Shown: in pieces, positions 26,796-64,000 of the stretch
How the letters are laid out: every line of letters begins with the position of its first letter
How positions within the stretch are numbered: position 1 is the first letter of the stretch
Assembly (NCBI GenBank): GCA_002104945.1
Contig: MCFH01000028.1
Span: forward strand, 248,001-312,000
DNA length: 64,000 nt
Direction of reading: 5' to 3'
Source of the DNA: Piromyces finnis finn
Taxonomy: Eukaryota > Fungi > Neocallimastigomycota
Made by a program: the position numbers and the translations under genes
The notes under the pieces: generated by a model
What the model was told of the DNA's origin: nothing
Database searches by the model: none
What the model saw: the letters and a program-made list of their open reading frames with translations, nothing else

Positions 26796-29069
26796 TTATT
26801 TTCTTTTTGTTTTAAAATCTACCTATTTAATTTTTTTTATAATAGTAAAAATATATATAAATAATAGATTAATATTTAATTTATTTTTATTATAATATAA
26901 ATTCATTTTATTATTTTTATGCATTAAATGTATTTACCATTTCCATGCATCATGTTGTTATTATTATTGGAATTAGGATTATTCATGTTGTTATTAAAGT
27001 TATTGGGATTTGGATGACCATTCATATTATTATTCATATTCATATTATTCATATTCATATTATTCATTTTCATGTTATTCATATTATGGTTATTATTATT
27101 TATATTCATGTTATTCATATTATGGTTATTATTATTTATATTCATATTATTCATGTTATGATTATTATTATTTATATTCATATTATTCATATTATGGTTA
27201 TTATTATTTATATTCATGTTGTTCATATTGTTATTATTATTACTGTTGTTATTGTTGTTATTGTTGTTGTTGTTGTTGTTGTTACCGTTCATAGGCATAT
27301 TATTTATAGGTATATTATTCATAGGCATATTATTCATATTACCATGGTTCATATTCATAGCATTCATATTATTACCATTCATATTCATGTTATTCATATT
27401 ACCATTATTTATGTTCATGTTATTCATACCACCATTCATATTTACATTATTCATATTGTTCATACCGTTCATATTGATGTTATTTATATTACCGTTATTC
27501 ATGTTCATATTATTCATATTATTACCGTTCATATTCATATTACCATTCATATTATTATTGTTGTTACTATTTATGTTCATATTATTCATATTGTTCATGT
27601 TATTCATGCCATTATTATTCATGTTGTTGTTCATATTATTCATATTCATATTATTTATGTTATTCATGTTATTCATACCATTATTATTATTCATATTATT
27701 ATTCATATGGTTCATATTATTCATGTTGTTCATGTTGTTCATATTATTCATATGACTCATATTATTTATATGATTCATATGATTCATGTTGTTCATATTA
27801 TTCATATTATTCATGTTATTCATATTGTTCATACTGTTCATATTATTCATATTGTTCATGTTGTTCATATTATTCATATTATTCATGTTATTCATGTTAT
27901 TCATATTGTTCATACTGTTCATATTATTCATGTTATTCATATTATTCATGCTATTCATGCTATTCATGTTATTCATATTATTCATATTATTCATATTGTT
28001 CATACTGTTCATGTTATTCATATTGTTCATGTTGTTCATGTTGTTCATGTTATTCATGTTGTTCATTCTATTTATATTATTCATATTATTCATATTATTA
28101 TCCATATTAATATTTTTACGATTCATTCCTGCTACATCCATATTTTTATTTAATTTTTGAATTTTATTTTTATAATCCATTTCGTTATTGGAGTTTTTAT
28201 CGTAGGGAGGATGAGGGTGAGGATGATTTTGAGTAGGTGTAAAAACAGGTCTTGCCGATTTAGTAAAGAAAAAGTTGTTATTTGATGAACTAGATGATGT
28301 ATCATTTGACTGAGAGATACTTCTTCTTCTATTTAGAGGCTGATTTCCGTTCATATTTTGACGATATGGTGGTGGTTGGGATTGTGGTTGGGGTTGTATT
28401 GGTGTTAATTTAGCAGATTGAATAGGTGTTTGGGGTTGTGACATATATCCTTGAGGTTTAATATTAATATTTATGTTGTTATTATTACCATTACTATTAT
28501 TTGCATTATGAGGTTTATCTATAAGGAAAAAGGAGAAAGAAACACGAATTTTATATATTTCAATGATTATATAAAACAACAATAGTAATAATAGCAAAAT
28601 GAGATAAATGTTAATAATAATATTAATAAACATATAAAATAATATAAAGAAAAATATAAGATGAAATATATCGTGATAAGTAATATCTAAAATGAATATA
28701 TTATTATTATATGTATATATTCATTTAAAAGTGATAATAGTATTTTGCATTTCACCTACATTCGTGATTAATATTTTTGTTCATCATAGGGATATTTTGA
28801 TTAGAGGATGGACTACTTTTAATATTTTGTCTTTTACCATTATTATTATTATTATTATTGTTGTTGTTGTTGTTGTTGTTGTTACTATAAAATAAGAATG
28901 TTAGATAATTTTCAATGTAATTCATTTCTCTTATAGTTTTATAGTAGTATTCAAATTCATTTTTACTAATTGCCTGGTTTAAAGAACTTTCATTGTAATT
29001 TAATTCTCTTTTAGTTTTATAGTAGTATTCAAATTCATTTTTACTAATTGCCAGGTTTAAAGAACTCAT
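26796..29069 (-). CDS. Asn/Met-rich low-complexity (prion-like) protein
   Basis: Exon 29069-28760 joins exon 28518-26938 by a phase-1 GT-AG intron. More than 350 residues of MNN/NNM repeats follow a Pro/Gln/Ser segment containing RRRSIS. The start codon and the short last exon (~26818-26796) are tentative. Confidence 0.65.
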
Positions 29070-37500: not shown

Positions 37501-37689
37501 TCAATATTTATTCTTTATTTTTTTTATAGTTTCAATACAACAATAACAATAAAAAAATCTTTGTTAAACAAATAAAAAAAAACGAATAAAAAGAAGTTGG
37601 TTCTATTCTCCTTTTCCTCTTTTTATTATGTATTTTTGAAAATTCCAAAATAAATTATTCAAATTTTTATAAGGAATATTCAAATTTGA

Positions 37690-38321
37690 TGATAACGGAT
37701 TGGTAGTTATATTACAACTTTTTAAACTACTTATTCGTTACCTTATATTGTTTTATCTCGACAGCTATTGTACGAGCTTTAACAATATCTACTTGTTTTA
37801 TTATTTATTTTAATTTATTTTATAATATTTTATAATATTTATAGTTTTATTATTTAATAATATTTATATAGAATAATAACACCAGATTTATTCTATAAAA
37901 TATTATTTATTATTAACACAATAATTACAAACTAGACAAGTTTAATTTCGTTTTTATATTTTCTTTTATTTATTGTTTTTATACTCTTTTTTAACAATAA
38001 TTTTTATTATATAAAAACTTATTTTTGTCTTTTAATTATTATTATGTATTATTTAACTAACTATATTAACTATTATTAAAAATTCAACTTCTTATTAATA
38101 TGTTAAGTCTTCCCATTTTCTACTAAAAATTATTATTATTCTTTATATTAAAAATTATTTTTATAATTTAACCCAATCAAATATATAAATTTATAAAATA
38201 TTTGATTTTATGTAAATTATATTTTTATGCTAAACTATATAAAATTATTTAATAATTATTTTTATAATAAAACGTTCTACAAATATCAAATTTATAATAT
38301 ATTTATAATTATTATTTATCA
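37690..38321 (-). repeat. Outer element 3' LTR (632 bp)
   Basis: tgataacgg...ttatttatca, matches 49103-49734 with no difference spotted by eye. Confidence 0.96.
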
Positions 38322-38324
38322 AGA

Positions 38325-38335
38325 TTTCCTCCCCT
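38325..38335 (-). other. Polypurine tract of outer element
   Basis: Minus-strand AGGGGAGGAAA, 3 nt before the 3' LTR. Confidence 0.85.
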
Positions 38336-38655
38336 AAGATACAACTTAGTGGTAGCTGATAAAAATATTCATAAATAATAATAAACATATGAATTTTTTG
38401 ATATTTTCATATTAAATATTTAAAAATTAAAATATTTTTTTTTTTTTTTTTTTTTTTATATATAAATTAAAAATAATATAAAATAAGGTTTATAAAAAAA
38501 ATGATGAAAAATTTAAAAATTTTTTATTAATAAAATTTTTTTTTCAAAAGGTAAAAAAAAATAAAAAAAAAATGAGACAAAATTCGTCTTCAGCATTTTA
38601 ATGTGTGTTTTTCTTGATTTTTTTTAATATAATGGTCGTTATTTTTTATATGTTT

Positions 38656-41600
38656 TTATAGAGAGGACAAATAGGGCTTCACATTTTTAATATGGACATT
38701 ACGTTCTAGTATTTTATGCGTGTCCAGTGTCTCTAAAACTAAAGTGTTGAATTTTGATACTTTCTTTACTTTAAATGGTCCCAAAAGGAATGGATCTAAT
38801 TTTTTTCTACCTATATATCTTACCAGCACTAGATCATCTGGCTTGTACCGGTGTTGCATAGACTTTGCTGTTTCATTTCTTTGGAGCCAATAGTCGTGAG
38901 CTTGCTTGATATTTTCAGTAGCTTCTTGTACCCAATTCTGGTGTCTGACAAAACGTCTGAAATTGTATTCTTCGTCAGACTCGTCCTTTTCTTTTGGAAT
39001 ATCTGGTAGTAACACACTAAGAGGCCATAAATCTTTTCTTCCATATAAAAGTTCAAAACTACTAAACCCTGTAACTTTCGAACGAGACGTACGCAGAGCC
39101 CATAGGGTTGCCGGAAGTATTTCGTCCCAATTTTCTTGATTTTTACATAAATGTCGAAGTATTTTTATTATTTCTCTATTTCTGTTTTCAACTTGTCCAT
39201 TAGCTTCAGGGTGATGTGGTGCAACGAATTGAACCCAGGAACCATATAAGTCTATCATTGTTTTTGTTATATCCGAAGTGAACTGACTTCCATTATCTGT
39301 GACAATTATTTCTGGGACACCATGTCTTGCAAAGACGTCTTTTAGGAAATAAATAACGTCTTGACTTTCAATTTTCTTTAAGGGAGCGGCTTCAACCCAT
39401 TTAGTAGTATAGTCTACTAAAACAATAATATATAAATTTCCTTTATCTGTTAATGGTAGTGGTCCAACTATATCCAAACCAACTCTGACGAAAGGTCTTT
39501 CAACTGGACTTGAAATATTAGACAGATTTTTAGGAATAGGTTTTGGACGATAGCATTGACATTCTAAACATGTTTTAACGACTTTATTTACGTCGTTCCA
39601 CATTCCTGGCCAATAATATATTTCTTTTAATCTGGAAAGTGTTTTTTCAACACCTTCATGGCCGACAAGATGAGCCTTACGAATCAAGGAGAATTTTAAA
39701 GAGTCATCTTCAATAACTTTTAAATAATTTCCAGATTTAGAGCGGTAAACAAGGGTACCATTTAAAAATGAATAGTTCTTCTTAACATATTCAATAATTT
39801 TGGGTGGAGCAAAGGTGGAAATGTTATCTTCTTTGTCTTCTAAAATAGAATGAATAGAATTAATATTTAAATTTTGCGAAGAGGGCATACGAGACAAAGC
39901 ATCAGCAAAAACATTATTTTTACCTTTTTCATAAATAATGTCAACTCTAAATTCATTAAACTTAGCTATCCATCTAATATGTCTATCATTAGAAGGAATA
40001 CTTGAATTAAAGAAGCCTACAAGTGGCTTATGGTCAGTGTACACTTTAACAACAAAAGGAGAAGCTGCAATATAGGAGCGGAATTTATTCAAAGCGAATA
40101 AAATAGCAATACCTTCTTTTTCAGTAACAGAATAACGCGTTTCAGCATCTTTAAGACATCTACTAACACAATAAATAGGAAATTCAATATCATAAGAGTC
40201 AGAAAGCTGAAGAAGAACAGCACCAACAGCATAAGAAGATGCGTCAGTACGAATAATGAACTGTTTATTAGGGTCGGGATATTTTAAAATACTAGAAGAA
40301 CAAATAAAAGAACGAAGTGTATAAAAGGCATCAGAATGGATATCTAACCAAATAAAACTAGCTTTAGGACTTGTTAGTTTATATAAACAACTTGAAATAG
40401 CAGCAAAGTTAGGAATAAATTTTCTATAGTAGCTAACTAAGCCAAGGAAAGACCTAAGTTGAGTGACGTTTTTAGGAGTGTTCCAAGAAGCTATAGCAAG
40501 AACTTTAGAAGGCATAGGTTTAATACCATCTGCAGTAAGTACGTGACCAAGAACTTCGACGGAGTTTTTGCAAAAAGAACACTTATCAATATTAATAGAG
40601 AATTTATGTTCTCTTAGGATAATAAAAAGTTTTTCAAGGTCCTTTAAATGTTGTTTAAAGTTAGGAGAATAAACTAAAATATCATCCATGTAAACAAATA
40701 GACAAGTACCGATAAGAGGCATAAGAATACGGTTCATTTCACGTTGGAAGGATGCGGGTGCATTAGTTAACCCGAATGGCATAACCTTAAAGTTAAAATT
40801 ACCAAACTTAGTAGTGAATGCTGTCTTTTCGATATCTTTGCTATTCATTGGAATTTGATGAAAACCAGAAAAAAGGTCAATAGCAGAGAAATATTTTGCG
40901 CCATGAACAGATTCTAGTAGTTCATCAATAAATGGTAGAGCATACGCGTCTTTAATAGTAATTTGATTTAATTTTCTATAATCGACACACATACGCCATT
41001 TACCATTTTTCTTTTTCACCATAACAACAGGGAATGACCATGGTGAATGGGAAGGTTCAATGAGACCGTGTTTCAATAGTTTCGAAATCTCTTCTTTTAA
41101 TGCTTGGGATTGAGCAAGAGATATCTTATAAGGTCTCAGTTTAATGGGTTTGGTGGATGTTAATTCAATAGAATGAGGTTCAGCATCAGCAACTGAAACA
41201 TCATCAATGGAATCGATTAAAACATCCCTATAATTTTTTATTAAAGAATGAAGTTGAATTTGTTCATCCTTTGAGATAATATTATCAATATCAGAAATAT
41301 CTTTTAAGGAATTAATATTATTCATAATAGTAATATGATATAATTTATTTCCTTGCGATATGGAATCTGATGGTTGAGCAACCATAATAGAGGATCCATC
41401 AGTTTTCATATATAAAGCGTCGTCATCAGGATCTATATATAGCCTATGATCCTTTTGTGACTGGCGCCCAAGTATGATATCATAGCAGGAATCTTCGTCT
41501 TCTAGGATCCAGAAGGTAGTACTTATTTTAAGCTTATCAAAACGAAGAACGAGACTTACTGCTTGATTAGTGGAGATGACTTGTTGGCTAGCTAGCTTGA

Positions 41601-41828
41601 AGAATGTTCTTTTAAAGTATTTAATTTTATGTTTCTTTGATATAATATCAAAGAAGGACTTAGTAATCACGTTGACATCAGAGCCTGTATCCACTAACAC
41701 TCTTACAATATTGTTGTCAACAGAACCTATAACAGAAGCGATATTGACTTTATTAATGACGTTAATCTCATTACTAACATCAATGTTGTCGACACTATTG
41801 TTAACATTATTGTTATTATCATCACCAT
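38656..41828 (-). CDS. pol: Outer element pol, 3' part: protease, RT, RNase H, integrase
   Basis: VLVDTGS (protease), CVDYRKLN...YMDD (RT), TDASSYAVGAVL...EKE (RNase H), HLVGH...C-x2-C, LDIVGP, TDNGSQF, ENRNREI, LGPFKV (integrase with GPF motif). The ORF ends YLSSL with no chromodomain. Confidence 0.95.
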
Positions 41829-42201
41829 TGTAACGAAATATTATAATAATAAACACACACACTCTAATGTATCAAATATATATGTATTTTTTTTAATAAT
41901 GTTTATTTATTAAATTTATTATTATAATACGACTAACTCGCTAGGTCAGTGTATTATCAAACTAAAGACGAAACAAAAAAAAAAACTAATTTTTATTAAT
42001 TATTAATAAAAACACTAAAGAACTATTTTATCTTTCTTATTCTCTCTTTTATACATGAAAATTATTTTTTTTTTTAATACAATTTGATAAGTGAATTAAT
42101 TACTTAATGATTGGTTATAAAAATATAATTATGAAATTTTCATTAATCTAACCTTAATGATTTTCTAGTCTAACCCTTATCATTAGATATACCTCATTAC
42201 A
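41829..42201 (-). repeat. Inner element 3' LTR (373 bp)
   Basis: tgtaacgaaa...cctcattaca, essentially identical to 46896-47268 (at most one T in a homopolymer differs by eye). Confidence 0.96.
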
Positions 42202-42203
42202 AG

Positions 42204-42213
42204 CTCCTCCTCT
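42204..42213 (-). other. Polypurine tract of inner element
   Basis: Minus-strand AGAGGAGGAG, 2 nt before the 3' LTR. Confidence 0.85.
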
Positions 42214-42626
42214 AAATTCGGATTCCAGACGAATTTATAAGCTAATAATTTTTTTTTTTTTTTTAAATAGGCAGTTGACTTCATATGAGAATTAAAAGGT
42301 GTGGTACAATGGTCGAGTAGTTGGCAATAAACTAGAAGGTTGTGGGTTCGAAGTCGGGGTTGGTAGAGTAACTTTGATGTAAGGCGGGTTGGCGCCAAGA
42401 CTAAAGTATGTCCAACAAGTACTAGAGGTTTCATAGGCAAGGTTCCAATATGGCCGTTTGATAGTACTTGTTCTTGGTACGCTTGTAAGTCCAGTAAATC
42501 CCTATGGGAGCTTCGCCAAAACGGTATCGGTTAAGTTTATTCTAAAAATTAATATTCCCTCATTTGTGTCTAAAAATTAATGAAAATTAGTTAATTTTAT
42601 TATTATTAGTTTTTTTTTTTTTTTTT

Positions 42627-45600
42627 TTAATGGGTCTTGTTGAATTCTCTTAGCTTTGCTGGACAGTTCAGATTTTCTTCGGGTTCCCATGAGGCTTCTG
42701 AAATAGGATATCCTTTCCATTTGATCAAGTACTGAGTTTTGTTATAGCGTCTTCTTTTGTCCAGAATTTCTTCTACTTCGTATTCCTCCTCTTCGTTTAT
42801 AATGACAGGTGGTGGAGGTTGAACTTTTCGGTTTGTACTTTTCCCTTCGAAGTAAGGCTCGAGAGATGATTTATGGAATACCGGATCAATCTTCATGTTA
42901 CCAGGGAGTTTCAATTTGAATGAGACTTCTGATATTTGTTGTTCAATTTCATAGGGACCGAGTTTCCGAGGGGTGAATTTTTTATTTCCCTTAACTAAAT
43001 TATTATTGATTAACCATACCTTTTCTCCTGGTTTGAATGACGGGCCTGGTTGTCTATGTCTATTGGCGAAATGTTCTTGTTTCTTTTGGGCTTCCGAAAG
43101 GTTTTTCTTGAGGGTGCTGATAATTTCTTTTAATTCTTTTGTGTATTCTTCAGCTCTTGGAACTTCACTTGTTGTTGGAATTGTTGGATTAAAATTAGGA
43201 TGGAAACCATAGTTCAAGAAGAAGGGTGTTTGTTTTGCAGATTCTTGAACTGAATTATTGTAACTAAATTCAGCTAGGCTTAAGTATTCGATCCAGTTAG
43301 TGCCTTTGTAATTTGAGAAGCAGCGTAGATATTGTTCTACAACGGAGTTCACTCTCTCCGTCTGGCCATTGGATTGGTGGTGATAAGCAGAAGAGTATTT
43401 CAAATCAATCTTGAGGGTAGCAAAGAATTTCTTCCAAAACTTTGAAGTGAACTGAGAACCTTGGTCGAGAACAATGTCGGAGGGGCATCCATGAAGTTTG
43501 AAGACGTTGTTAATGAAAGCTTCGGCAGCACGTTCAGCAGAGGGAACTTTTTCAAGAGGGATAAAGTGAGCCATTTTTGTCAATCGATCAATGACAACGA
43601 AGATACAGGTAAATCCACGAGAAGAGGGGAGGTCAGTGATAAAATCCATAGCAATGGAAGACCAGGGACGTTCACCTAAAGGAAGAGTGGATAATAACCC
43701 GTAAGGTTTATGTCTAGAGGATTTCGAACGACAGCAGACCTCACAAGAACGGACATAGTCCTTAACATCCTGATACATTTTGGGCCACCAGTAGTTACGG
43801 GAAATCAAGGATAAAGTTTTTGAAATACCAAAATGGCCGGCAGCAGGGGAGTCATGACAAGAAGACAGAATTTCAACTCGGCAATCATTAGGAACATAGA
43901 TTTTATCTTGGAAAAGGAGGACGTTGTTACTAAGTTTGTAGTCAGAAGAACAATTATCATTGAGAAGTTGATTAGAAGTCTCAATGAAGAATTTGTCAAG
44001 TTTACAAGAGAGAGCAATTTTTTCAAGAAGAGAAGAAGGAGTGGATGAAGCAAAGCAGGAGCTGAAATTTTCGGGACGAAAGACAGAGTTATTAGAATCG
44101 GAATTGCAAGAGTGATCAAGATAGTCAGGTCTTCTTGACAAGGCATCGGTTTTCCCGTTCGAGGAACCAGGGCGATATTCAATGACAAAATCGAATTCAG
44201 CAAGGAAAAGGGACCATCTAATTAATCTCTGAGTCATCTTCTCCGGTTTCTTCTGAAAAAGGAGGTTTCTGTGGTCTGATATAATTTTGAAAGGATGATT
44301 CGCACCTTTCAAAAAATGTCTCCACACTTCTAAGGACGCGACGATAGCCAAAAGTTCTTTATCATAGATAGGGTAGTTCTTCTCCGGGTTTGTAAGGGAT
44401 CTAGAAAAGAACGCAACAGGGTGAAGAATATTGTCGGACTTGTTGACTTGAGACAATACAGCACCTATGGCGAAGTTACTTGCATCGGTTTCGACAACGA
44501 AAGGTAGGTCAACATCAGGATATGCAAGGATAGGCTGACTAATAAAATGCTTAACCAAAGCATCAAAAGCATCTTGAGCGGTATCGTTCCAAACGAAGGC
44601 GGTGTTCTTCTTGCAAAGTTGGTGGAGTGGGTGAGCAACCTTAGCAAAGCCAGGAATAAATCTACGATAATAGTTGGCTAAGCCTAGGAAAGATTGTAGT
44701 TCATGGACCGATTTAGGAGTCGGCCATTCCGCAATGGCTTTCACCTTATTAGGGTCCATTCCGATACCAGAGGCAGAGATTCTATGACCAAGGAAGTCAA
44801 GACAAGGAGAGTCGAATAGACATTTTTCAAGTTTAGCGTACAGTCCGGCTTCTTCGAGTCTACGAAGGACTTCATTGACGTGTTCATGATGTTCGGCTAT
44901 ATTATCAGAGAAAATGATAATATCGTCAATATACGAAAAGACGAATTTACCGATAATGCCTTCAAGAACGTCGTTAATAAAATGTTGGAAGACTGCAGGA
45001 GCGTTCTTGAGACCGAAAGGCATTACCAGATATTCGAAATGGCCAAATTGACAGGTGAAGGCGGTCTTATATTCATCGCCTTCTTTGATTCTTACCAAGT
45101 TATAGGCGGATCGAAGATCTAGCTTCGAGAACACCTTAGCTTTTCCTAGATGATCCAACATGTCTTGGATCAATGGGAGAGGGTACGAGTTCCTAATGGT
45201 GATTTCGTTCAAGCGGCGGTAGTCGATACACATACGAAGTTCTCCACTCTTCTTCGGGACAAACAGAACGGGAGCACCAGCTGGCGATTTGGATTTGCGG
45301 ATAAACCCCTTTTTTAAATTTTCATTAATGGTTTCTTCTAATACCTTTGATTCTTTCTCAGTAAGTCGGTAGATTGGACCATAAAACAAGTTGCTATTTG
45401 GTCTCAGGTTGATCTCACAGTCGTACGGGCGATGAGGAGGGAGTTTATCAGCGAGCCTTTCCTCGAACACTTTGGAGTGTTGAGAGTAGTGAATTGGAAT
45501 TTGGGGTGACTCAACTTCAGGTTCTTCTAAACAAGTGAATACATTGAAAGGGTATTCAGGTGTATTTCCAACTGACATTTCGTCCTTCGATTGGTCTTCG

Positions 45601-46826
45601 AGTTCAGAAGTGGTAGAGCTAGCAGATTCTTTCCTTAAGTAATTTTCCTTACAGTATTCAGAATGATAGGAAACGTCCTTACTAGCAAAATTGATTGTCG
45701 GATTGTGAAGGGCCAGCCAATCAGAGCCAAGAATACAACAGTAAGAAGGCAATTCTACGACGTAAAATTGTAACTGGCATGAGTGATTCATGTGTTCCAC
45801 AGTTATAGGCCAAGTCTGGCCGATAATCTTTTGGTGACCTCCGATACCTATAATTTGTGGGCATTTTACTTTGGTAATTATAGGGATCTCATGGGCCTTA
45901 ACAAAGGCGTGGTCTATCAAACAGAATTGTGAACCACTATCTAAGAGAACTTTAGTTCCGACAGATTTGTATGGAAGAACAATATCAACATCGATAACAG
46001 TTTGAGGTAAAGAGGAGTTATCCGAAAGTCGAGTGGATTTTTCTTGTTCATTCAAAACATGGACCCCAGCATTATTAGTATGGTTTTCCTTTTTGGTTCT
46101 AATAGGGCATTCAGATAATCGGTGACCAGGTTTACCACAATATAAGCAGAGATTCTCTTTCATTCGGCGGCTACGTTCTTCACTTGAAATGGGGCCAAAA
46201 TTATTTTCCTTCTTGGGCTGAGTGGATTTACTTGTAGATCTTTCTGAGGAGCGGGATTGGAAGCTTTGTTTAGAACGGAAACTTCTATTGGATCTTCTGT
46301 TTATTTCCTCTTGGTGGCATGCCAATCTACTTCCTATACGACTGGCTATTGTTTGTAAGTTTATCAAGGTAGAAGGGCCAGGAAACATCTGAAGGATATG
46401 GGTGGCGATTCTATCGTCCAACCCATCAACAAAAGCATCCATCTTGGCTTGTTCATTCCAAGTGGATTCATCAGCATAGTAGTTAAATTCCTTGATATAC
46501 TCTTGAGTATTGGATAGGCCACGTTGTTTGATCTTCTTGAGCTTTTGGTTGGCAGTATAGACCATATCCTGAAAACCAAAAGCAGCCTTCAGCTTTCCAA
46601 CAAAGGCGCCATAATCCTGTAAGCAAGGATCATGGTTGTTAATCAAGGTAGCAGCCCAATTCATTGCATCCCCGTAGAGGCGACTAACGACGTAGAAGAC
46701 CTTTTCTCCATCGTCCCTTCCTATTTCAGGATGGATCATAAAGATCATGTCCATTTTGGCTAAGAATCCCTTCAGGTAGCGACGGTTGCCATCAAAACCG
46801 TTCTTCAAATCAGCAGAGTTATCCAT
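42627..46826 (-). CDS. gag-pol: Inner element Gag-Pol polyprotein with C-terminal chromodomain
   Basis: Ty3-type capsid ([12 protein letters not shown]...AMNWA), CCHC knuckle [51 protein letters not shown]...CEVC, MDFI...DQGSQF...TERVN, LGPYEI, chromodomain [11 protein letters not shown]...[21 protein letters not shown]. Confidence 0.97.
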
Positions 46827-46884
46827 AAAAAAAATTAGAAGTAAGCAAATAAACGAGGCACTGAGGTAGCGATCTTTTTCTTAG

Positions 46885-46895
46885 AGTGTTTTTAT
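46885..46895 (-). other. Self-priming PBS of inner element (11 nt)
   Basis: Minus-strand ATAAAAACACT directly after the 5' LTR is the exact complement of minus-strand AGTGTTTTTAT at 47083-47073 inside that LTR. There is no TGG tRNA-type PBS. Confidence 0.8.
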
Positions 46896-47268
46896 TGTAA
46901 CGAAATATTATAATAATAAACACACACACTCTAATGTATCAAATATATATGTATTTTTTTTAATAATGTTTATTTATTAAATTTATTATTATAATACGAC
47001 TAACTCGCTAGGTCAGTGTATTATCAAACTAAAGACGAAACAAAAAAAAAAACTAATTTTTATTAATTATTAATAAAAACACTAAAGAACTATTTTATCT
47101 TTCTTATTCTCTCTTTTATACATGAAAATTATTTTTTTTTTTAATACAATTTGATAAGTGAATTAATTACTTAATGATTGGTTATAAAAATATAATTATG
47201 AAATTTTCATTAATCTAACCTTAATGATTTTCTAGTCTAACCCTTATCATTAGATATACCTCATTACA
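46896..47268 (-). repeat. Inner element 5' LTR (373 bp)
   Basis: Direct repeat of 41829-42201. Confidence 0.96.
47113..47120 (-). promoter_or_regulatory. Candidate TATA box of inner LTR promoter
   Basis: Minus-strand TATAAAAG 30-37 nt upstream of the start site (47083) predicted from the self-priming geometry. The AT-rich context lowers specificity. Confidence 0.5.
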
Positions 47269-48138
47269 ACCATCGACATCACCTTCGTTGATAATATTAA
47301 TAAATGAACTAATATCATCATCATCAAGATCCAAATTTTGAATGGCGTTTATTTTTCTAACGTCATTAGGATCAAGTTTTAAGCCTTTCGCACAAAGTCT
47401 TCTAATGATAGGGCTAACAGCAAAGAGTTGTGCAAAGGTAATACCAGCATTGGTATTATTGAGAGCATCATATACATCATACTCCTTATTTTTGCCAAGC
47501 ATAATAATAGAACGTAAGAAGTCGTAATAGTTTCCTTTCAGCGACTTCTTACTTCCAATAACTTCTTCCTCTATATCATCTTGATTACTAGAGATATCCG
47601 GACCAGTTCTCCTTTTGTTTCTGGCTTCTTTATTTTTCTTCTTGGCAGAAGAGATATTCTTGTCTGCAATTACCGAGGGGTCTAGGATGTCCATGCGGGA
47701 AGTAGTGGTATGAAAATTTGAATTTTTCTCGTTTTGAATTTCTTGCTGTTCTTTCATCTGAGTGGCCTTTGTGTGTATTGGCAAGGGGTTTTCTCGAAGT
47801 TTCTTTTTCTTCGACTGAGTCACGTGATCCTCATCTTCACTTTCATCACTTTCTTCAGAACTTTTCCTCTTGAATGCGTAAATAAGGTTTTCGATGTCCT
47901 TATCATCGATTGTATTTGTCACGTGATTTTGTGTAACATCATCCTTATCTATGTCTTTGATTGGATCATCCACCAAAGGGTCAGAGAATTTTTCTTCAGA
48001 ATTTGAAAATTTTTCTGTTTTATGTGAGTCACGTGTTTCATCAACATAAACTTGCTCGTTTATGTTATTGATATTGTGGGTTTGGTTATTATCAATTTTG
48101 GAGTTAGAAGGGGAAGATTGAGAACTTCCCCCATTTAA
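47269..48138 (-). CDS. pol: Outer element pol, 5' part (Gag-protease spacer), -1 frame relative to gag
   Basis: Open from the slippery site (LNGGSSQSSPS...) to the inner-element TSD (...EGDVDG). It continues in frame into 41828-38656 once the insert and one TSD copy are removed. Confidence 0.88.
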
Positions 48139-48144
48139 TTTAAA
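48110..48144 (-). promoter_or_regulatory. -1 programmed ribosomal frameshift signal
   Basis: Slippery heptamer U_UUA_AAU (48144-48138) in the gag frame right before the gag UAA, then 5-6 nt spacer and hairpin GGGGAAG-uucucaau-CUUCCCC (48131-48110). Confidence 0.8.
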
Positions 48145-49004
48145 TGGTTTTGGGAAAGGAGAGTAGCAATAAACTTATTCATATCTGACATTTCATTAGG
48201 GCAAAAACGAGCATCATGTCCTCTCTGATTACAGCGGTGACAGACATGAATTTTCATCTGGGCAAAACTCTTGGTCAGAGCCTCTAGATCGGATTCCTTA
48301 ACGTCTTTTGTACCTCCTTGATTTTTATTGTTATTACTACTACTACTGTTATTATTACTATTATTATTATTATAAGGCGATTTTTCATTGTTGGTAGTAG
48401 TTCTTTTCTTAAAGGAGCTATTGCTTTTGTTTCTTTTATAGTTATAGTCGGTTTCGTCATCACTTTCATAAGCTGAGATGGTTTCTTCTGCTGTGATGGC
48501 GATTCTCATAGCGTCCTTTAAGGTTTTTGGTTGTTTATTAATAAGAGAATTCATAATGGGAGTTCTCCTATTAAAGGCTTTAATGTAAAGGAAAACAAGT
48601 CTTTCTTCAGAAGGCTTATCCCTTTCTTTAATTTCTTTCAAGAGGTCATTGAAGGAACGATTGAATTCTCTAACTGAACTCTTGTTTATTTTAATTTTTT
48701 CTAGTTTATTGAGGTTCTTATTGGAAGTTTTATCATCCTCAAATAAGTTAGATATTTTATTGATAAATTCATTATAAGATAGGGATCTATCTTCATAATA
48801 AATATCGCTACAAAGATCCTTAGTTTTGTCCGAAGTAGCGATTAGAGCAACTCTTTTTTTTTCTTTTTCAGAAAGGTTTAAGTCCTCCAAGATATCTTCG
48901 AGTTCCATCTTCCATCTAAAGAACTTGGTAGTTTTCTTTCCGAGAGGGCTTATTTCTTTGGCCATACTTGCGGCTCTTTCAAAGTTATTCTTATCTTCGG
49001 ACAT
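48135..49004 (-). CDS. gag: Outer element Gag (289 aa) with CCHC zinc knuckle
   Basis: ORF directly downstream of the PBS, capsid-like helical region (FFRWKMELEDIL...SVREFNRSF...QPKTLKDAMRIA) and CHRCNQRGHDARFC. Confidence 0.92.
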   Translation of the reverse strand: MSEDKNNFERAASMAKEISPLGKKTTKFFRWKMELEDILEDLNLSEKEKKRVALIATSDKTKDLCSDIYYEDRSLSYNEFINKISNLFEDDKTSNKNLNKLEKIKINKSSVREFNRSFNDLLKEIKERDKPSEERLVFLYIKAFNRRTPIMNSLINKQPKTLKDAMRIAITAEETISAYESDDETDYNYKRNKSNSSFKKRTTTNNEKSPYNNNNSNNNSSSSNNNKNQGGTKDVKESDLEALTKSFAQMKIHVCHRCNQRGHDARFCPNEMSDMNKFIATLLSQNHLN

Positions 49005-49090
49005 ATTTATTAATTTAATTAAATAAATATGCTATATATATAAGTAAACAGGAATTTTATATTTTCGGCTATCCCACGGGACGACTGAGG

Positions 49091-49100
49091 TTCTCCACCA
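49091..49100 (-). other. tRNA primer-binding site of outer element, tRNA-Ala type
   Basis: Minus-strand TGGTGGAGAA, 2 nt after the 5' LTR, complementary to a tRNA 3' end ...UUCUCCACCA. U70-C71-C72-A73-CCA is the typical tRNA-Ala end. Confidence 0.75.
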
Positions 49101-49102
49101 CT

Positions 49103-49734
49103 TGATAACGGATTGGTAGTTATATTACAACTTTTTAAACTACTTATTCGTTACCTTATATTGTTTTATCTCGACAGCTATTGTACGAGCTTTAACAATA
49201 TCTACTTGTTTTATTATTTATTTTAATTTATTTTATAATATTTTATAATATTTATAGTTTTATTATTTAATAATATTTATATAGAATAATAACACCAGAT
49301 TTATTCTATAAAATATTATTTATTATTAACACAATAATTACAAACTAGACAAGTTTAATTTCGTTTTTATATTTTCTTTTATTTATTGTTTTTATACTCT
49401 TTTTTAACAATAATTTTTATTATATAAAAACTTATTTTTGTCTTTTAATTATTATTATGTATTATTTAACTAACTATATTAACTATTATTAAAAATTCAA
49501 CTTCTTATTAATATGTTAAGTCTTCCCATTTTCTACTAAAAATTATTATTATTCTTTATATTAAAAATTATTTTTATAATTTAACCCAATCAAATATATA
49601 AATTTATAAAATATTTGATTTTATGTAAATTATATTTTTATGCTAAACTATATAAAATTATTTAATAATTATTTTTATAATAAAACGTTCTACAAATATC
49701 AAATTTATAATATATTTATAATTATTATTTATCA
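49103..49734 (-). repeat. Outer element 5' LTR (632 bp)
   Basis: Direct repeat of 37690-38321. Confidence 0.96.
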
Positions 49735-49748
49735 TTGAAATTTGTAAA

Positions 49749-49841
49749 GCTCCTGTAGCCTAGAGGTTTAAGGCGTCGTGCTTATAAGGGTGTTCCTCTT
49801 ATGCAACGCGAAGATCGCGGGTTCGACCCCCGCCAGGAGCA
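49749..49841 (+). tRNA. tRNA-Ile(TAT): tRNA-Ile (anticodon UAU) with 19-nt intron (49787-49805)
   Basis: Acceptor stem GCTCCTG/CAGGAGC plus discriminator A, A-box TAGCCTAGAGG, anticodon stem TCGTG/CGCGA with loop CT-TAT-A^A, B-box GGTTCGACCCC, T4 and T6 runs at 49847 and 49859. Confidence 0.95.
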
Positions 49842-50269
49842 TTATATTTTAATAAAAATTTTTTATCCAAGCATTAAAAGAAAAAAATAGGGATAGTTTT
49901 TTAATCCTTCAAACTCTTATAAAAGATACCTATAAATTATATATATTATAAAAGGCTATTACTTTTATACTACAACCCTTTTACCATCATCATCATCATC
50001 ATTACTACCACTAATAACAGTTTTAATAGTGTATAAAAAAAAATTACCCCAAAATTCTTGTCATGATTGAATACAATTAAAATATTTAATTACTAAAAAA
50101 AAATTTTTAAAGTTTTACATTTAAAAAAAAAGGTAAATTTAGTTTTTATTCAAACAAAAAAAAAAAACTCTTTTTACTTTGATGTTTTTATCGTTCATAA
50201 TGTTACTTTTTTTTTTTTTTACTAATATTATTCATTGAATTAAATTGGGTTGGTCACCTTTTATTTTCT

Positions 50270-50314
<45 letters not shown>

Positions 50315-52219
50315 TAAATAATTAAAGTTTTAATTTTCATCTCAATTTATTTACTTATTCTATATTTATTCATTTATTTCCTAATACAAATTTATCTATC
50401 TATCTATTTATTTATATATTAAAGTAATTTTTTTTATTAACAATAAAAAAATTTTAATTTATGTATTGAATTTTAATCCCTTCATTTTAAGAAGAAAAAA
50501 AAAGATTTCCTTTTATAGTAGTATTATAAACAATATTCATTGGTTAGAATAAAATACAGAAAATATTTAATTTAATTTTATTTTCTAATTTTTTAAAAAA
50601 AAGTTTTTTTTATTATTTATTTTTATTAATTTTTTTTTCTACATTTAGTATTATAGTTTAATTTATAGTTTAATTTATGGTGTAATAGATTAACATTTAT
50701 TTTATTCGTGTAAAACTAATAAAAAAAGAAATGATACTATCAATTAATTTTTTTATTATAGAATTTCTTAAATTAAATTTTATCTGTAGTTCAAAACATG
50801 AATAGAATTAAACACAACACATTTAAAAAAATAATAATAAATAAACTTTTATTAATTTATTTTTTAATAAAATGGAAAATTTTTAAAACATCACATTTTA
50901 TCTAAAAAAGGTAAAAAAAAGTCATGAAAAATTTTTTTTCTATTTTTTTTTAATATAAAAAAAGTTAAAAAGGGTTTTCAGTATTGAAATTCTTTTTATC
51001 CTTCTTAATGACGGAGAATAAGGATGAAATAAAAACGTTAAAATAAAAATGAGTTTAACAATAATGATTATTATCATTAATAGCCCAGAAAACAAAAGGG
51101 TATTTTTTATTTATTATAGAAAAAGCATTAATAATGAAAAAAATTTTTTTATTCTTTTTTGATAACTCTAAAATTAATATAAAAAAAATTTTTTTAATAT
51201 AAAAGAATTTAATTTATTTTGATAGGTAAAAAAAAAAATACTAAATTTAGGATATAAAAGATAGGCACTTTTTTTAATATAAAATAAATAAAAAAAGAAT
51301 TAAATTTAAAATTTCCATTTTTATTTGTAAAACAGCTTCTTCCTATTATTTTATATAAATAAATGAATAAACAAATAAATTAATAAATAAATATATTAAT
51401 CCCTATTAATAAATGAATGAATAATTAAATTAATAATAAATAACTATTAATAAATGAGTAAATAATGAGTAAATAATGAATTAATATATATTAATAAATA
51501 AATAAATTAATAAATAAACGAATAATAATAGATTAAGGATTCCATTCTATAATTATTAAAATTATTATTTAATTCAACTTTTACAATGAGTTTATTATTA
51601 TGGGATATAATAATAAACTAGTTTTTATTCTATCTTATATTTTATAATGAAAGATATAATTCATATATAGTTTTATACTTTATAATGAAAGATATAATTC
51701 CTATATAGTTTTAATTTACATTTTATTTTTAATTCAAATGGTCATCATGACTAAAAATGAGAAAAAGTTAAAGTCAATTGAATAGTAAAGTTGCTTTTTT
51801 TTTTTTTGGTTTTGCTTGCTCATTTTATTTTTGAATGGTTTGAGATATTGGAAAAAAATTTTTTTTATTCGTTCTATTTTATTCTATAAAATTCTTTTTT
51901 TGACATGGCAGTTGGTGGATGGTTGATCAAAGAAAAAAAAAATTTTTTTTATGATACATTTCATTAGGAATGAATTAGTAATTTTTTTATATAAATAGTC
52001 ATTATTTATTCATTTATTAGTTCATGATGCATTATTTATTCATTCCTTTATTTTTGATGCATAGTTTTAAAAAAATGGTTATGCCTCTGCTTTTTTCGTT
52101 AAAAGAGTGAGTAATCATTGAAATGAAAATTTATAAGCCGCTTTTTTTTTTTTTTTTTAGATTTTATAAGCCATTCTTTTGTTTGAAATTTTATTGATTC
52201 AAAAGGTTAATTTTTACCC

Positions 52220-52554
52220 ATTCATTCATTACTATATATTAATATATTTATTTATTTAATTATTTATTCATTCATTACTATATATTAATATATTTATTTA
52301 TTTAATTATTTATTCATTCATTACTATATATTAATATATTTATTTATTTAATTATTTATTCATTCATTACTATATATTAATATATTTATTTATTTGATTA
52401 TTTATTCATTCATTACTATATATTAATATATTTATTTATTTGATTATTTATTCATTCATTACTATATATTAATATATTTGTTTATTTAATTATTTATTCA
52501 TTCATTACTATATATTAATATATTTATTTATTTAATTATTTATTCATTCATTAC
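52220..52554. repeat. 46-bp AT-rich minisatellite, seven copies
   Basis: Unit ACTATATATTAATATATTTATTTATTTAATTATTTATTCATTCATT at 52231, 52277, 52323, 52369, 52415, 52461 and 52507. Confidence 0.92.
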
Positions 52555-55500
52555 ACTTTTTTGTATGGTGTCACAAAATAAATTTCTTTTTTATTTCCCA
52601 TTCCTTTCCTTCCTTATATTATTTTGTATTAATGAATTAATGTTTTCTATTTAAATTCTATTCAAATTGATTTTATTGATAATAAATTAGCAGTAATGGA
52701 AATGGATACATAAAAAAAGTTTGTGGTATAAGCAATGAAAATGGTTGGTTTATTTTTATATTAAAAATTAAATACTGGAAAATTAAATAAATTCATTCAA
52801 ATGATTATCATTTAACTAGGGAACTTTAGCAGAGGAAAAAAAAGTTCATTTAGCATATTATTATTTGAACGGCATTCTTATTATGTTAATGATTTAAAAA
52901 TGTATTACCGCCATTATTATTACTATGTTAATGATTTAAAAATGTATTACCGCCATTATTATTACTGCTATTTAATTTTTGGGCTTAACGAAAACTATAC
53001 AATTTTTTTTTAATTTAACGGAACAATATCAAGTGAATAGAAAAATTTTTTTTTATTTTTTGTTTCATCCTTTTTTAATTTATATTAAATTGGAATTTAT
53101 TATTAATATTATTTATTATTAAATTTCATAAATTTCATAAAGAAAAGATTTTTTTTTTTTTGACATAGAATTGTTTTAATCTAAAAATTATTTTTTTTTT
53201 TTTAGAAAAAAAAAGTATAGAAAATTTACTCATTTAAATAACTAAAAAAAAAAACACTTTTTATTAATAATAACTATAAACTACTTTTTTCCACAACATT
53301 TTTCCATCTTTATTAGTATAAAATGAAATCGTTTTTTTATTTAACGGTTCTATCCACTAATGAAATCATTACATTTTAATATTGTAATAATAGTTTTTTC
53401 TTTTACATTTTCGTGGACGTATTTATTTTTATTTCTATTTTTGTATGTAATGTCAACATTTTTTATATTAATTTTCATTTTAATTTATTTCCTCATCATT
53501 GGTTTTAAAACAGATTTTCCCTTAATAATATATTATTGATTATATTAAATTTTATATTTACAATTTGAAAAACGAAACTTTAAAAAATACTAAATTTAAT
53601 AACAATTAAGGTTTATTAAAAAAGAAATAGAAAAAAAAGAGAAAAGGTTTTATCATTTTATTAGCAGAGTAAAGGTGATTTTAAATTTGATTTTAATGAT
53701 CATGAAGGTATGACTATAAAAATATATAATGGATACTTTGAATAGAATTAAGCAGTATAAAGTATTCCATTAAAGTTTTGGTTTAGGTTAGGTTAATAAA
53801 ATCACCATTAAAAAAAAAAACTTTTTAAAATTGTTTCCATTTAAAAAAAAAAAGGATTGTTACTTTAGGATGATGTCAACAAATCCATGAGTATGTTATT
53901 TAAAGATGTATTATGGTTATGATTTCTTTTTATATATATATACATATAATAAAATTACCTTTAAAAAGTTTAAAACTATTTTTTTTAAAAAAAAAAAAAA
54001 CAAAAAATACAAATAATAAAATAAAACTCTAGGCGGTTAATGTTTTATTTTTTAAAAAAAACCAAAGACTATAACCATTTAAAATATATTTTGTGTGCCA
54101 TAGGAAAGGAAAAAAAAACCAACTATTTGTAAAGTCAATTTATATATTTGTATTATTTATTTAAAATATACATAAAAAATAGCTTGAACTTTTAAAACTT
54201 GTACAAGTCAATTGAACTTTAGTCGCCGCTTTAATTCACCATTGATTTGAAATTAGTTTTTAATTCTTACTAAAAAGCAAACAAAAGATACCAACCAACC
54301 AACTTTTAAAATTTAAATTTTAATTTTTCATTTTTCTTCATCTATTTATTTTTTAATTTAGTTTTTAATAAAATTAATAAAAAAATAATTAAAAGTAAAA
54401 TTAAATATTTAATTATAATTTAATATAATGAATATTATTTTGTTAGGAAAGTTTAGGGTGAAAAGGTGGTGTATCGTAGAGGTCTTTGAAATTTTCTTTT
54501 TTTTTTTTTTCTAAAATAATAATGACAATTATAAGAAAAAAAAATTGTTTATGAATTTATTATCTTAATAATTTTTTTAAATAATACGAATATTATATAT
54601 ATATATATATATATATAATAAATAAGAAAACTTTGATTTATTTATTTTAAAAGTCTTTCTTTTTTTATTTATTTATTTTCTTTTCTTTCTTCTATTGCCG
54701 CAGGAATAACTTTTATTTGCGGTGAAATTGAATTTTTTAAGAAAAATGAAAAGAGACATATTAAATTTCTTTATATGGAAATTATTGATAATGTATACAA
54801 CATAGAAATGTATACAATTAGTTAAAAAAAGAAGGAAAGGTTAAACTCCTCAATAACCTATTCGCATAAACTTTTAGGATTGAAAAAAAAAAAAAGTTGC
54901 TCTCTTTGCATAAAAAATAAGTTTATTATTTTTTTAAAAAAGGTATTTTATTAATAATAAAAAAGTCTATTTTCTTTTTTAATCATTTATATATCATATT
55001 TAGTGTAGAAAAAAAAAAGACTATCGAATATTTAATTTATACTTTTTTAAATAAAAAAAGATTTTATGGTGTGTCTAATGAAAAAAAAAAAGAGTAAAAT
55101 TAATATTTAATGAGTCATTTTATTGATTTTAAAAAGTGAAAAAACCAATTTTTTTTTATTTATTCTATTATAAAAGGAATGAAGATTTATTATATTTAAA
55201 AAAGAAAAAATAAGAAAAAATTATTATTTTAATTTATTTTTCCCTCATATAACATTTCTTTAGCATGGCTATCGTATATTATAGTATTAACATTGCATAC
55301 ATTGCATGGCATGGCCATAGAATTACATTTTCAAAAAGAAAAAAAAATTTTTTTTAATAAATTAAATACTTTGATATTTTAAAATTTTTAAGGTTTTAAA
55401 TTATCTAAAATATAAAGTCACAGTAATACTCTGAAGGATAGGTGTACCATTGCAGTAATAAAAAATTTTAACAATTCATTTAGTTTTATTGTTGTTTTAA

Positions 55501-61950: not shown

Positions 61951-64000
61951 ATGTCTGTAATAGCTATGTCAATCAATGATAATACACTAGAGAAAATAAA
62001 TACTTCTACTATAACTAATAACCTATCTTTAAATTTATATGATACTACTCTTTTAAAAAATAAAATGGAAAATAGAATAAACGTACCTGTAATAACAAAG
62101 GAAATTCAGCAACAACTTCAAAACCAATATAAAATGCAACCATCTCAAGCAGCTCCTATACCAAACCAATCCATATCAATACCCCAAACATTATCTTTAA
62201 CCCAACCTGTACAACCTCAAATAATAAAAGTTATACAAGTAGCTCAACCATCTATACCAAATGCTCCTACTCAAAATGTATTTATAAATCCAATGGCTCA
62301 ACCAGCCAATATAAATTCTTCTCATACCTTAAATATACCAGTGGTTGATACCTTAAAAAGAAGATCTTCAATACCAAATATACTAGAACAACAAGGTCCT
62401 TCACAATCACAACCAAGGCGTCGTTTATCCATGCAATTAAATGAAATACCACTATCCAATCCAGATGCTATGGCTATTGATCCAAAGCCAGCACCTGTCA
62501 CACAAACGACGTCCACTGCTCAACCAGCAGTTGTGGCTGCCCCACCTCAAGTTCGTTATATTTATGGCATTCCAAGAGCACCTTCATTACCTATTAATAA
62601 TATTGTACCTACTACTATGTCACCAATTCAACCTATGAAAGCATTTCCCGCTCTACCACTTTCAAATTTTGTAGTTTATTTAGTCAATCGTATTTGGTAT
62701 CATGGTAAACCAGAATGTCGTAATGCGGCTCATCCAGAGTATGCTGAATTAACAAAATTTGTTGAAGATGTATTAAAAATCACTGATTTATCCTTAAATA
62801 CTGTCCTTTTAAGTCTTCGTTACATTTATATGCTGCGTCAAAAGTGTAATACAGATCAAAAAATATTGGAATGGTCCCTGCGCGATTTAATCGCTGTACA
62901 TTTTATGCTGGCTAATAAATTTTTATCAGATGATCGTTATTCTAACAGTGTATGGGCTTCGGTTACCGGAAAGGATTTAGATGAAATGAATCGCTTAGAA
63001 AAGAAATCATTGGAAATTCTTCAATTTAATTTAAATGTGCATCATGATGATTTTAAAAATTGGGAAAAAAGTATTTCTACGTTAGGTAAGGAATTAAGAC
63101 AACGTATGACCACCCTTCAACAAGAAAGAAATTTAAAGAAACAACAAGCAGAACTTACTGCTCTACTGAATGAAACCATGTCTAATACCAATGTCATTAA
63201 AATGCCACTTTTCCATCAAACACCACCTACCCTTTCTACCACCTTAATGGTAAATAATGTACCCACCATTCCAATTAATCCAACCGCCGCTATAAACATT
63301 ATTAATGGTCATCCTACTGCTGCTGCTACCATCACTCCAAATTCAACCACAATCATTACCAGTAATACCCAAGTAGCTCCTACTCTTGCAACATCATCCC
63401 TTAATTTAAAATTTTCACCACAACCAACAAATATTGCCAATGTTGCCGTGGTGAATACCGTCAATCCAGCACAAGTTGCAACGGTAACGAATGTATCCAA
63501 TGTAACGCTTGCTCAAAATCCAATTTCATTGAATGCAGTTACTGTCAAGCAAGCCATACCCACTTCACCAAAAGTATCTGTAACACCAATGTTTATATCC
63601 TCCTTACCTACCACCTCTTTACCCGCTACCGGTATTACCATAGTCAATCCAACCAATACGGTGAATACAATGAACGCCAATTCTATCTATCCATCACCAC
63701 CATTATGTCGTATATCCAATGCTCAACCTACCAATACCGTGTTGGCAACTTCAAATTTTGTAGGACCTACTGCAGTGGCATTAGTTCCAAATCATGAAGT
63801 TTCAACAGTCAATGCTACACCAGGCGTCAATACCCTTACTAATGAAACTTCATCATCAACTCTTTTTACCACTCAAAATGTTCGTACCGCGGCTTTTATT
63901 CCAACCAATGTTAGTGCTTCAACTCCAGCCCAAAATACCACAATTAATGTAGCCACAAATCAATGTCGCTTCCTTAAACATTCTCTTTCCAGTAATAGTT
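61951..64000 (+). CDS. Pho80/Pcl-family cyclin (Clg1/Pcl5-like), intronless, 3' end beyond window
   Basis: Open frame from ATG 61951 to the window end (absent from the ORF track, presumably because no stop lies inside). Cyclin box ~62650-63070: LSNFVVYLVNRIW...LTKFVEDVLKITDLSLNTVLLSLRYIYMLR...FMLANKFLSDDRYSNSVWASVTG...EMNRLEKKSLEILQFNLNV, flanked by Pro/Thr/Gln-rich sequence. Confidence 0.85.
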   Translation, partial: MSVIAMSINDNTLEKINTSTITNNLSLNLYDTTLLKNKMENRINVPVITKEIQQQLQNQYKMQPSQAAPIPNQSISIPQTLSLTQPVQPQIIKVIQVAQPSIPNAPTQNVFINPMAQPANINSSHTLNIPVVDTLKRRSSIPNILEQQGPSQSQPRRRLSMQLNEIPLSNPDAMAIDPKPAPVTQTTSTAQPAVVAAPPQVRYIYGIPRAPSLPINNIVPTTMSPIQPMKAFPALPLSNFVVYLVNRIWYHGKPECRNAAHPEYAELTKFVEDVLKITDLSLNTVLLSLRYIYMLRQKCNTDQKILEWSLRDLIAVHFMLANKFLSDDRYSNSVWASVTGKDLDEMNRLEKKSLEILQFNLNVHHDDFKNWEKSISTLGKELRQRMTTLQQERNLKKQQAELTALLNETMSNTNVIKMPLFHQTPPTLSTTLMVNNVPTIPINPTAAINIINGHPTAAATITPNSTTIITSNTQVAPTLATSSLNLKFSPQPTNIANVAVVNTVNPAQVATVTNVSNVTLAQNPISLNAVTVKQAIPTSPKVSVTPMFISSLPTTSLPATGITIVNPTNTVNTMNANSIYPSPPLCRISNAQPTNTVLATSNFVGPTAVALVPNHEVSTVNATPGVNTLTNETSSSTLFTTQNVRTAAFIPTNVSASTPAQNTTINVATNQCRFLKHSLSSNS

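Follow-up and report, generated by a model that had tools for sequence, protein, structure and literature searches.

Integration beside tRNA genes has been described for the gypsy-type LTR retrotransposons Ty3, Ty3p, Tj1, Tca8, Tyl3, Ylt1, Tyl6, DGLT-A and Skipper-2, the hosts of which are all ascomycete yeasts or Dictyostelium (PMC5911963). Ty3 is positioned by TFIIIB, and the precision of its integration has its basis in a vestigial chromodomain (residues 446-511) which follows the CTD of the integrase and contacts Brf1 (PMC8632968). DGLT-A is without a chromodomain, carries a tail of 32 amino acids after GPY/F and integrates ~15 bp upstream of tRNA genes (PMC5006619). In the literature, we found no report of tRNA-gene targeting by LTR elements in anaerobic fungi. 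The locus considered here lies in a stretch of 64,000 nucleotides from the gut fungus Piromyces finnis finn (assembly GCA_002104945.1, contig MCFH01000028.1, positions 248,001 to 312,000; hereafter the window), in which an LTR element of a family here called F stands directly upstream of a tRNA-Ile(UAU) gene. As judged from sequence, this outer element is very probably a recent Ty3/gypsy insertion whose integration was targeted to the start region of Pol III-transcribed genes that carry promoters of the tRNA type. Such targeting is previously unreported for anaerobic fungi as far as we found, the kind itself being known from Ty3 and DGLT-A.

With Ty3 the element shares membership of the Metaviridae and a fixed spot, in F the putative Pol III start, upstream of tRNA genes, which is used in both orientations (PMC8632968, PMC5911963). 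However, Ty3 employs a +1 frameshift whereas the pol of F lies in the -1 frame, the duplication made by Ty3 is 5 bp long and that of F 4 bp, and the integrase of F ends before the region corresponding to the chromodomain by which Ty3 contacts Brf1. The original prediction had read both a -1 rather than +1 frameshift and a 4-bp rather than 5-bp duplication from the window, and both readings hold, the former through a canonical slippery TTTAAAT before the gag stop that is the probable site of the shift, and the latter through the occurrence of TTGA at both outer edges. Going by frameshift direction, duplication length and chromodomain, all of which differ, F is not Ty3 in the strict sense. In the predicted architecture of its integrase F resembles DGLT-A, which is likewise of gypsy type, without a chromodomain and with a short tail after GPY/F (PMC5006619, PMC5911963), and whose copies, many of which are solo LTRs, likewise precede tRNA coding sequences by ~15 bp (13-33) in either orientation. 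The resemblance does not extend to ORF layout, as DGLT-A has a single gag-pol ORF whereas in F gag and pol occupy two different frames and a -1 slippery site is present. Furthermore, there are no intact copies of DGLT-A in D. discoideum, whereas F and a second family, B, have copies with 100% identical LTRs, and the host of DGLT-A belongs to a eukaryotic supergroup other than that of the gut fungus. Tj1 of Schizosaccharomyces japonicus is, like F, a fungal gypsy element and inserts within ~12 bp upstream of tRNA genes (PMC4600332, PMC5911963). However, Tj1 is self-primed, produces pol via stop-codon suppression, also targets 5S genes and resides in an ascomycete, whereas F possesses a primer binding site (PBS) and likely a -1 shift, and showed no insertions at the five 5S genes found. 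Finally, Tyl3, Ylt1, Tyl6 and Tca8 of Yarrowia and Candida are Ty3-like elements located 5-30 bp upstream of tRNA genes (PMC4600332, PMC5911963), from which F differs in that their hosts belong to the Ascomycota.

The element upstream of the tRNA-Ile gene

The features of the locus are collected in Table 1. With its chromovirus insert included, the outer element measures 12,045 bp (37690-49734, minus strand) and displays the structural hallmarks of Metaviridae, namely TG...CA LTRs, a target-site duplication, a PBS and a polypurine tract. Both LTRs start with TGATAA, end with TTATCA and are flanked by TTGA, and the positions of the PBS and the polypurine tract place the element on the minus strand with its 5' LTR facing right. 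The polypurine tract precedes the 3' LTR in all F copies with internal sequence, and the PBS is conserved across all F copies. The prediction of an LTR element 14 bp upstream of a tRNA-Ile(UAU) gene was re-found in each of its parts (LTR ends, TTGA and tRNA start), the distance from LTR edge to tRNA +1 being exactly 14 bases, TTGA and 10 more. By analogy with yeast tRNA genes, the Pol III start likely falls within the latter 10 bases.

Table 1. Features of the outer element, its insert and the adjacent tRNA gene (window coordinates).
Feature	Position	Strand	Basis or remark
TTGA target-site duplication, distal copy	37686-37689	.	Identical 4 bp at both LTR outer edges
3' LTR of outer element (family F), 632 bp, TG...CA	37690-38321	-	100% identical to 49103-49734
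Polypurine tract AGGGGAGGAAATCT (minus-strand reading)	38322-38335	-	Read directly
pol residues ~235-1291 (RT, RNase H, integrase to SH3/GPF module)	38659-41828	-	tblastn, 99.8% to L003
Nested chromovirus interrupting outer pol	41829-47268	-	LTR, duplication and domain evidence
pol N-terminal part, residues 1-236	47269-47976	-	tblastn, 100% identity to L003 pol
gag ORF, 289 aa, Ty3_capsid	48135-49004	-	ORF and Pfam
Slippery heptamer TTTAAAT directly before gag stop	48138-48144	-	Frames read
PBS TGGTGGAGAACCTCAGTC, 2 nt from LTR	49083-49100	-	Read directly
5' LTR of outer element, outer edge toward tRNA gene	49103-49734	-	LTR comparison
TTGA duplication, tRNA-proximal copy	49735-49738	.	-14 to -11 relative to tRNA +1
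10-bp leftover of native tRNA 5' flank, likely Pol III start region	49739-49748	+	Position read directly
tRNA-Ile(UAU) gene, intron-containing	49749-49841	+	ARAGORN and Rfam (57.1 bits)

The tRNA-Ile gene is the sole tRNA found in the window by ARAGORN and Rfam. Its intron of 19 nt (~49787-49805, with a boundary ambiguous by one A) appears in the Rfam alignment as a 20-nt insert that follows CUUAUA, at the canonical 37/38 intron site, which gives the anticodon UAU (Ile). The A box lies at 49756-49766 and the B box at 49820-49829, and runs of T follow the gene at 49847-49850 and 49859-49864. An alternative assignment of the same gene to Ala-UGC, offered by ARAGORN -i, is unlikely, since pair 3:70 is U-A. 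Among contigs assembled from public read data, no piece bridged the junction 49734/49735. Family F is present in public runs guessed to be RNA, where its presence is no proof of transcription. One contig from a DNA run (X1) joins an F LTR end (the 49735 side in the window) to an F LTR start (49103) with AAA between them, and this joint could represent either a head-to-tail stack of two LTRs, as at locus L011, or the junction of a 2-LTR circle. Elsewhere in the window, long degenerate tandem repeats occur at 26922-28000, where the unit lengths are multiples of 3 or 9 bp, and at 52128-52646, where the unit is 46 bp (near 52.2 kb). GC rises to 36% over the last 2 kb (62001-64000).

The coding capacity of family F could be read from a copy of 6601 bp (L003:1501-8101) that has no insert and whose LTRs are identical, and which encodes a 289-aa gag (Ty3_capsid) and a 1291-aa pol. 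Pfam domains of F follow the gypsy order (Ty3_capsid, RVT_1, RT_RNaseH, Integrase_H2C2, rve), to which a marginal protease match may be added (Asp_protease_2, E = 0.008, under the Pfam cut-off). The pol frame is -1 relative to that of gag and contains no stop in the 40 nt that precede the end of gag, and expression of gag-pol likely proceeds by -1 frameshifting at TTTAAAT. The best PDB match of the F pol is Ty3 Gag-Pol (7q5b, E = 4e-103); the integrase alignment to this structure stops at polyprotein residue 1444 of 1547, where the F integrase ends, its C-terminus reaching ~40 aa beyond the GPF motif. A Pfam search found no chromodomain in the integrase of the outer element, and an AlphaFold (AF2) model of the last 202 integrase residues predicts a long helix, then an SH3-like barrel and then the protein end (mean pLDDT 64; 70-89 over the barrel). 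The outer element is therefore not a chromovirus, the only chromodomain being that of the nested inner element. The latter is bounded by 100% identical LTRs of 373 bp and a 5-bp duplication, ACCAT, and contains a single gag-pol ORF of 1399 aa with SH3_Tf2-1 and Chromo domains in Pfam; it is located inside another element and not at a tRNA gene. Given the identical LTRs of the outer element and of the nested chromovirus, both look very young.

Shorter elements of 3.9 kb, with LTRs 94-98% identical to those of family F, were observed at L006, L009, L013 and L018 (contigs C229, C131 and C165). Their gag and first 400 aa of pol are only ~77% identical to those of F and the remaining pol is missing, so that they look like a non-autonomous or chimeric F subfamily; two of them adjoin tRNA-Thr and tRNA-Cys. 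As to priming, the PBS of family B also begins with TGGTGGAGA, as does that of F. No match to the PBS was present among the tRNA genes of the fetched loci or the window, and no tRNA ending in GGTTCTCCA occurred in the fetched loci. Whole-genome pattern searches for an Ala-type acceptor stem with G3:U70, and for a T-loop followed by the 18-nt complement of the PBS, returned nothing. The tRNA-Ala named as primer in the original prediction, as against the tRNAiMet of Ty3, is accordingly no more than a candidate.

Insertions at tRNA genes across the genome

The genome searched (56,455,805 bp in 232 contigs) contains at least 42 near-full copies of the F LTR, with 40 of 304 candidates scored, and the 42 copies with their flanks reduce to 31 loci and ~30 independent insertions. 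In four of the latter, a canonical tRNA gene stands 13-16 bp off. Besides the window, these are a second tRNA-Ile(UAU) at 13 bp from an F LTR edge (L026), a tRNA-Thr(UGU) that adjoins the 3' LTR at 15 bp (L013) and a tRNA-Cys(GCA) that adjoins the 5' LTR at 16 bp (L018). All four genes present their 5' end to the element, which occurs in both orientations, and the three elements with paired LTRs are bracketed by perfect duplications (TTGA in the window, CAAG at L013 and TTCT at L018). Direct adjacency to a canonical tRNA gene is thus seen only in 4/~30 F insertions. Even with 3000 tRNA genes assumed, the expectation by chance is ~4e-4 per insertion, and the binomial probability of placing four of ~30 in an 8-bp window is 9e-10.

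The same relation was found when starting from the tRNA genes. A whole-genome search scored 63 genes, mostly identical copies of tRNA-Arg(UCU) and tRNA-Thr(UGU), and the 3 kb upstream of the 40 top-scoring genes comprise 31 non-redundant loci and 28 distinct junction classes. An LTR end lies 11-18 bp upstream of the first tRNA (median 14 bp) in 24 of the 28 classes, a sample that is dominated by the two multi-copy species (Arg-TCT and Thr-TGT) and their tandem partners (Glu and Gly), and in which some classes may stem from the duplication of genes that already had an old insertion beside them. The first tRNA in these 24 classes is Arg, or Glu or Gly in tandem pairs, and the LTR termini read ...ACA or ...TCA, with one mutated to ...TTA. 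In the remaining classes the LTR end is found at 22 bp in one and at 28 bp in another, and two loci, both tRNA-Thr, have none. These junctions comprise at least ten LTR families, and a single tRNA flank type was met with different LTR families at different offsets, which argues for separate insertion events. Insertion close to the tRNA 5' end thus recurs over families and over tRNA species. Stacks of LTR ends spaced 3-9 bp apart extend for kilobases upstream of tRNA genes. The original prediction, which held the tRNA adjacency to be improbable by chance and the element to be a candidate Pol III-targeted retroelement, is accordingly strengthened from two sides, by F LTRs at four tRNA genes and by the occupancy of 24 of 28 tRNA loci; the search it proposed, for other copies within ~30 bp upstream of Pol III genes, revealed strong enrichment at tRNA genes for family F and for many other families.

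Several observations on the tRNA loci may be set apart from this result. The LTRs at the tRNA genes of L047 and L036 were considered as members of family F and rejected, as only the terminal 11-30 nt are shared; they belong to other families. At L034-L042, L055, L061, L064 and L066-L071 the genes form tandem pairs, with tRNA-Glu(UUC) followed by tRNA-Arg(UCU) at ~9 bp or tRNA-Gly(UCC) followed by tRNA-Thr(UGU) at ~7 bp, and the tRNA-Arg(UCU) gene exists in at least 34 identical copies with common 3' flanks. In an oriented copy of one pair (L053:2960-3000), the LTR terminus ...TTTTACA falls within the upstream tRNA-Glu, 28 bp ahead of tRNA-Arg, and the first gene seems to have been lost to an insertion directed at the second. 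The sequence (T)AGTAGTTTTATTTA recurs 30-40 bp after the 3' end of tRNA-Arg (L034, L036, L047, L049-L052 and L061), and could represent either the end of an element that inserts on the 3' side of tRNA genes or a flank that the members of this gene family have kept in common. No LTR ends were found beside the five 5S rRNA genes found, all of which have identical 5' flanks (L072-L076, on C8, C153 and C188); on C153 they recur every 8534 bp, and the 5S genes are probably part of the rDNA repeat.

Most of the remaining F copies are solo LTRs with perfect 4-bp duplications, and the duplications of F are AT-rich and without consensus. At a distance of 1-7 bp these solo LTRs are flanked by other LTR termini (...CA or TG...), which match the same families as are found at tRNA genes, and from the identity of these neighbouring ends the remaining F copies would appear to sit in stacks that lead to tRNA genes. 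Two such stacks could be reconstructed. On contig C1 the order is an LTR end of family H, TATT, an F solo LTR (478582-479205), TATT, a B element of 7.9 kb with 100% identical LTRs (479210-487107), TATT, 12 bp and a tRNA-Arg gene at 487124. At L003/L004 it is GATA, a full F element, GATA, an H solo LTR (8106-9182), GATA and a decayed tRNA-like piece, in which GGTTCGACCCC is found at 64 nt from the end of the LTR. The same 4 bp were therefore used three times in each stack. A copy of the L003/L004 piece, 99% identical, is present at L021 with an F solo LTR at the same offset.

These decayed pieces, detected through box motifs and BLAST only, bear on how the insertion point is chosen. The solo LTRs at L001, L002 and L021, which have no LTR neighbour on the relevant side, show a B-box-like GTTCGA at 65-67 nt, comparable to the 65-66 nt that separate the LTR edge from the B box of real intronless tRNAs. 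The two tRNA-Ile genes, which contain introns, have their B box at 84-85 nt instead, whereas the A box is 20-23 nt from the LTR edge in all cases, with or without an intron. As the A-box offset remains constant while that of the B box shifts with the intron, the insertion point would be set from the 5' end or the A box, and this offset hints at TFIIIB as the landmark, for which it is the expectation. In the flanks of orphan and sandwiched F solo LTRs, Rfam called no tRNA at E <= 10. One decayed tRNA-like piece, which contains AGTTCGAGACC, is represented at both L002:2133-2332 and L001:891-1043, with 86% identity between the two; at L002 an LTR end of the family of the window chromovirus lies ~70 bp past it.

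Proposed mechanism and competing explanations

The present data allow a model to be proposed for the insertion of family F. In this model, the ends of F would be joined to the target at 10-16 nt ahead of the first base of the mature tRNA, in either orientation and with a 4-bp duplication, at a position set from the gene 5' end or the A box and not from the B box. Most likely the intasome would be tethered to, or positioned by, TFIIIB that has been placed by TFIIIC, as in Ty3. The contact made by F must in that case differ from that of Ty3, because the F integrase is without a chromodomain. Repeated insertion at the same few bases would then give rise to the stacks, in which the gene-proximal element is presumably the latest arrival.

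Among the alternatives, the one that survives best, and which is nevertheless unlikely, proposes that position is determined by a DNA or chromatin feature of tRNA 5' flanks (nucleosome-free, bendable and AT-rich) and not by contact with TFIIIB or TFIIIC. It would account for AT-rich duplications without consensus, for the same preference in at least two gypsy lineages and for an integrase that is without the sole domain known to contact Brf1 in Ty3. However, the insertions fall in a ~8-bp window that is fixed relative to the A box at six tRNA species and at decayed tRNA-like pieces, identical 4 bp are re-used, and the genome is AT-rich throughout, so that AT content alone cannot mark sites. 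It is still less probable that the elements aim at the ends of other LTRs, with tRNA adjacency as a by-product. Most F solo LTRs do have other LTR ends within 1-7 bp, often on both sides, but some insertions adjoin tRNA genes without any older LTR in between, the distance to tRNA +1 does not vary, the orphan solo LTRs, which lack an LTR neighbour, are followed by a B box at 65-67 nt, and both reconstructed stacks terminate at a tRNA or tRNA-like piece. Very little credence can be given to a third scenario, in which the tRNA genes themselves have moved, either as retroposed tRNA-derived copies beside LTR ends or as genes carried by elements. The at least 34 identical tRNA-Arg(TCT) copies, with ~10 bp of 5' flank and long 3' flanks in common, speak for such movement. 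However, perfect 4-bp duplications bracket complete elements, with the proximal copy between LTR and tRNA, the junctions extend over six tRNA species and at least ten LTR families, and one tRNA flank type is associated with different LTR families and different offsets. Chance adjacency in a repeat-rich genome, suggested at most by the single locus visible in the window, is refuted by a binomial P of ~1e-9 for F alone and by an LTR end at 24 of 28 independently sampled tRNA loci.

Relatives of family F and wider distribution

Family F is one of several gypsy families found at tRNA genes in this genome. The integrase C-termini of families B and H are 40-50% identical to that of F; B has 706-bp LTRs and at least 40 copies, many with identical LTR pairs. 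Family C (29% identity) belongs to a gypsy lineage further removed from F; its SH3 is of the Tf2-1 type, and it likewise carries no chromodomain. The C-terminus of the F integrase has 37 strong relatives (44-79% identity), which derive from metagenomes and an Orpinomyces protein set, and beyond them the next matches fall to E ~1e-13; as far as the searched protein database shows, the F clade looks confined to anaerobic gut fungi.

A wider reading of these data is tentative, in our estimation possible though falling just short of probable. It holds that a gypsy clade of gut fungi may have come to target tRNA genes independently of Ty3, through a different Pol III contact that dispenses with the chromodomain, that it may have filled nearly all tRNA 5' flanks, and that decayed promoter pieces, some perhaps carried by other mobile elements, may be targeted as well. 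As such targeting has so far been described in ascomycete yeasts and dictyostelid amoebae (PMC5911963, PMC5006619), its range would be extended to the Neocallimastigomycota, an early-branching fungal phylum, where several families appear young in having copies with 100% identical LTRs. Elements of the F type would offer a natural comparison for how TFIIIB position may be read without the Ty3 chromodomain, and bear on the question of convergence. For the annotation of anaerobic-fungus genomes, tRNA genes may serve to mark transposon stacks, and LTR stacks can in turn point to decayed Pol III promoters.

Of five contigs from elsewhere with homologous pol genes, only one, from an ENA metagenome (L079), was informative. 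It carries a related pol, the integrase C-terminus of which is 57% identical to that of F. As no second LTR ties the LTR-like end on this contig to the pol element, it provides a weak hint of a further targeting case. That end, ...GCGCTTATCA (...TTATCA), is located ~0.8 kb past pol (L079:5240-6130) and precedes by 15 bp a tRNA-Arg(UCU) gene that apparently corresponds to the tRNA-Arg of this genome, with the first 10 nt compared and the anticodon identical.
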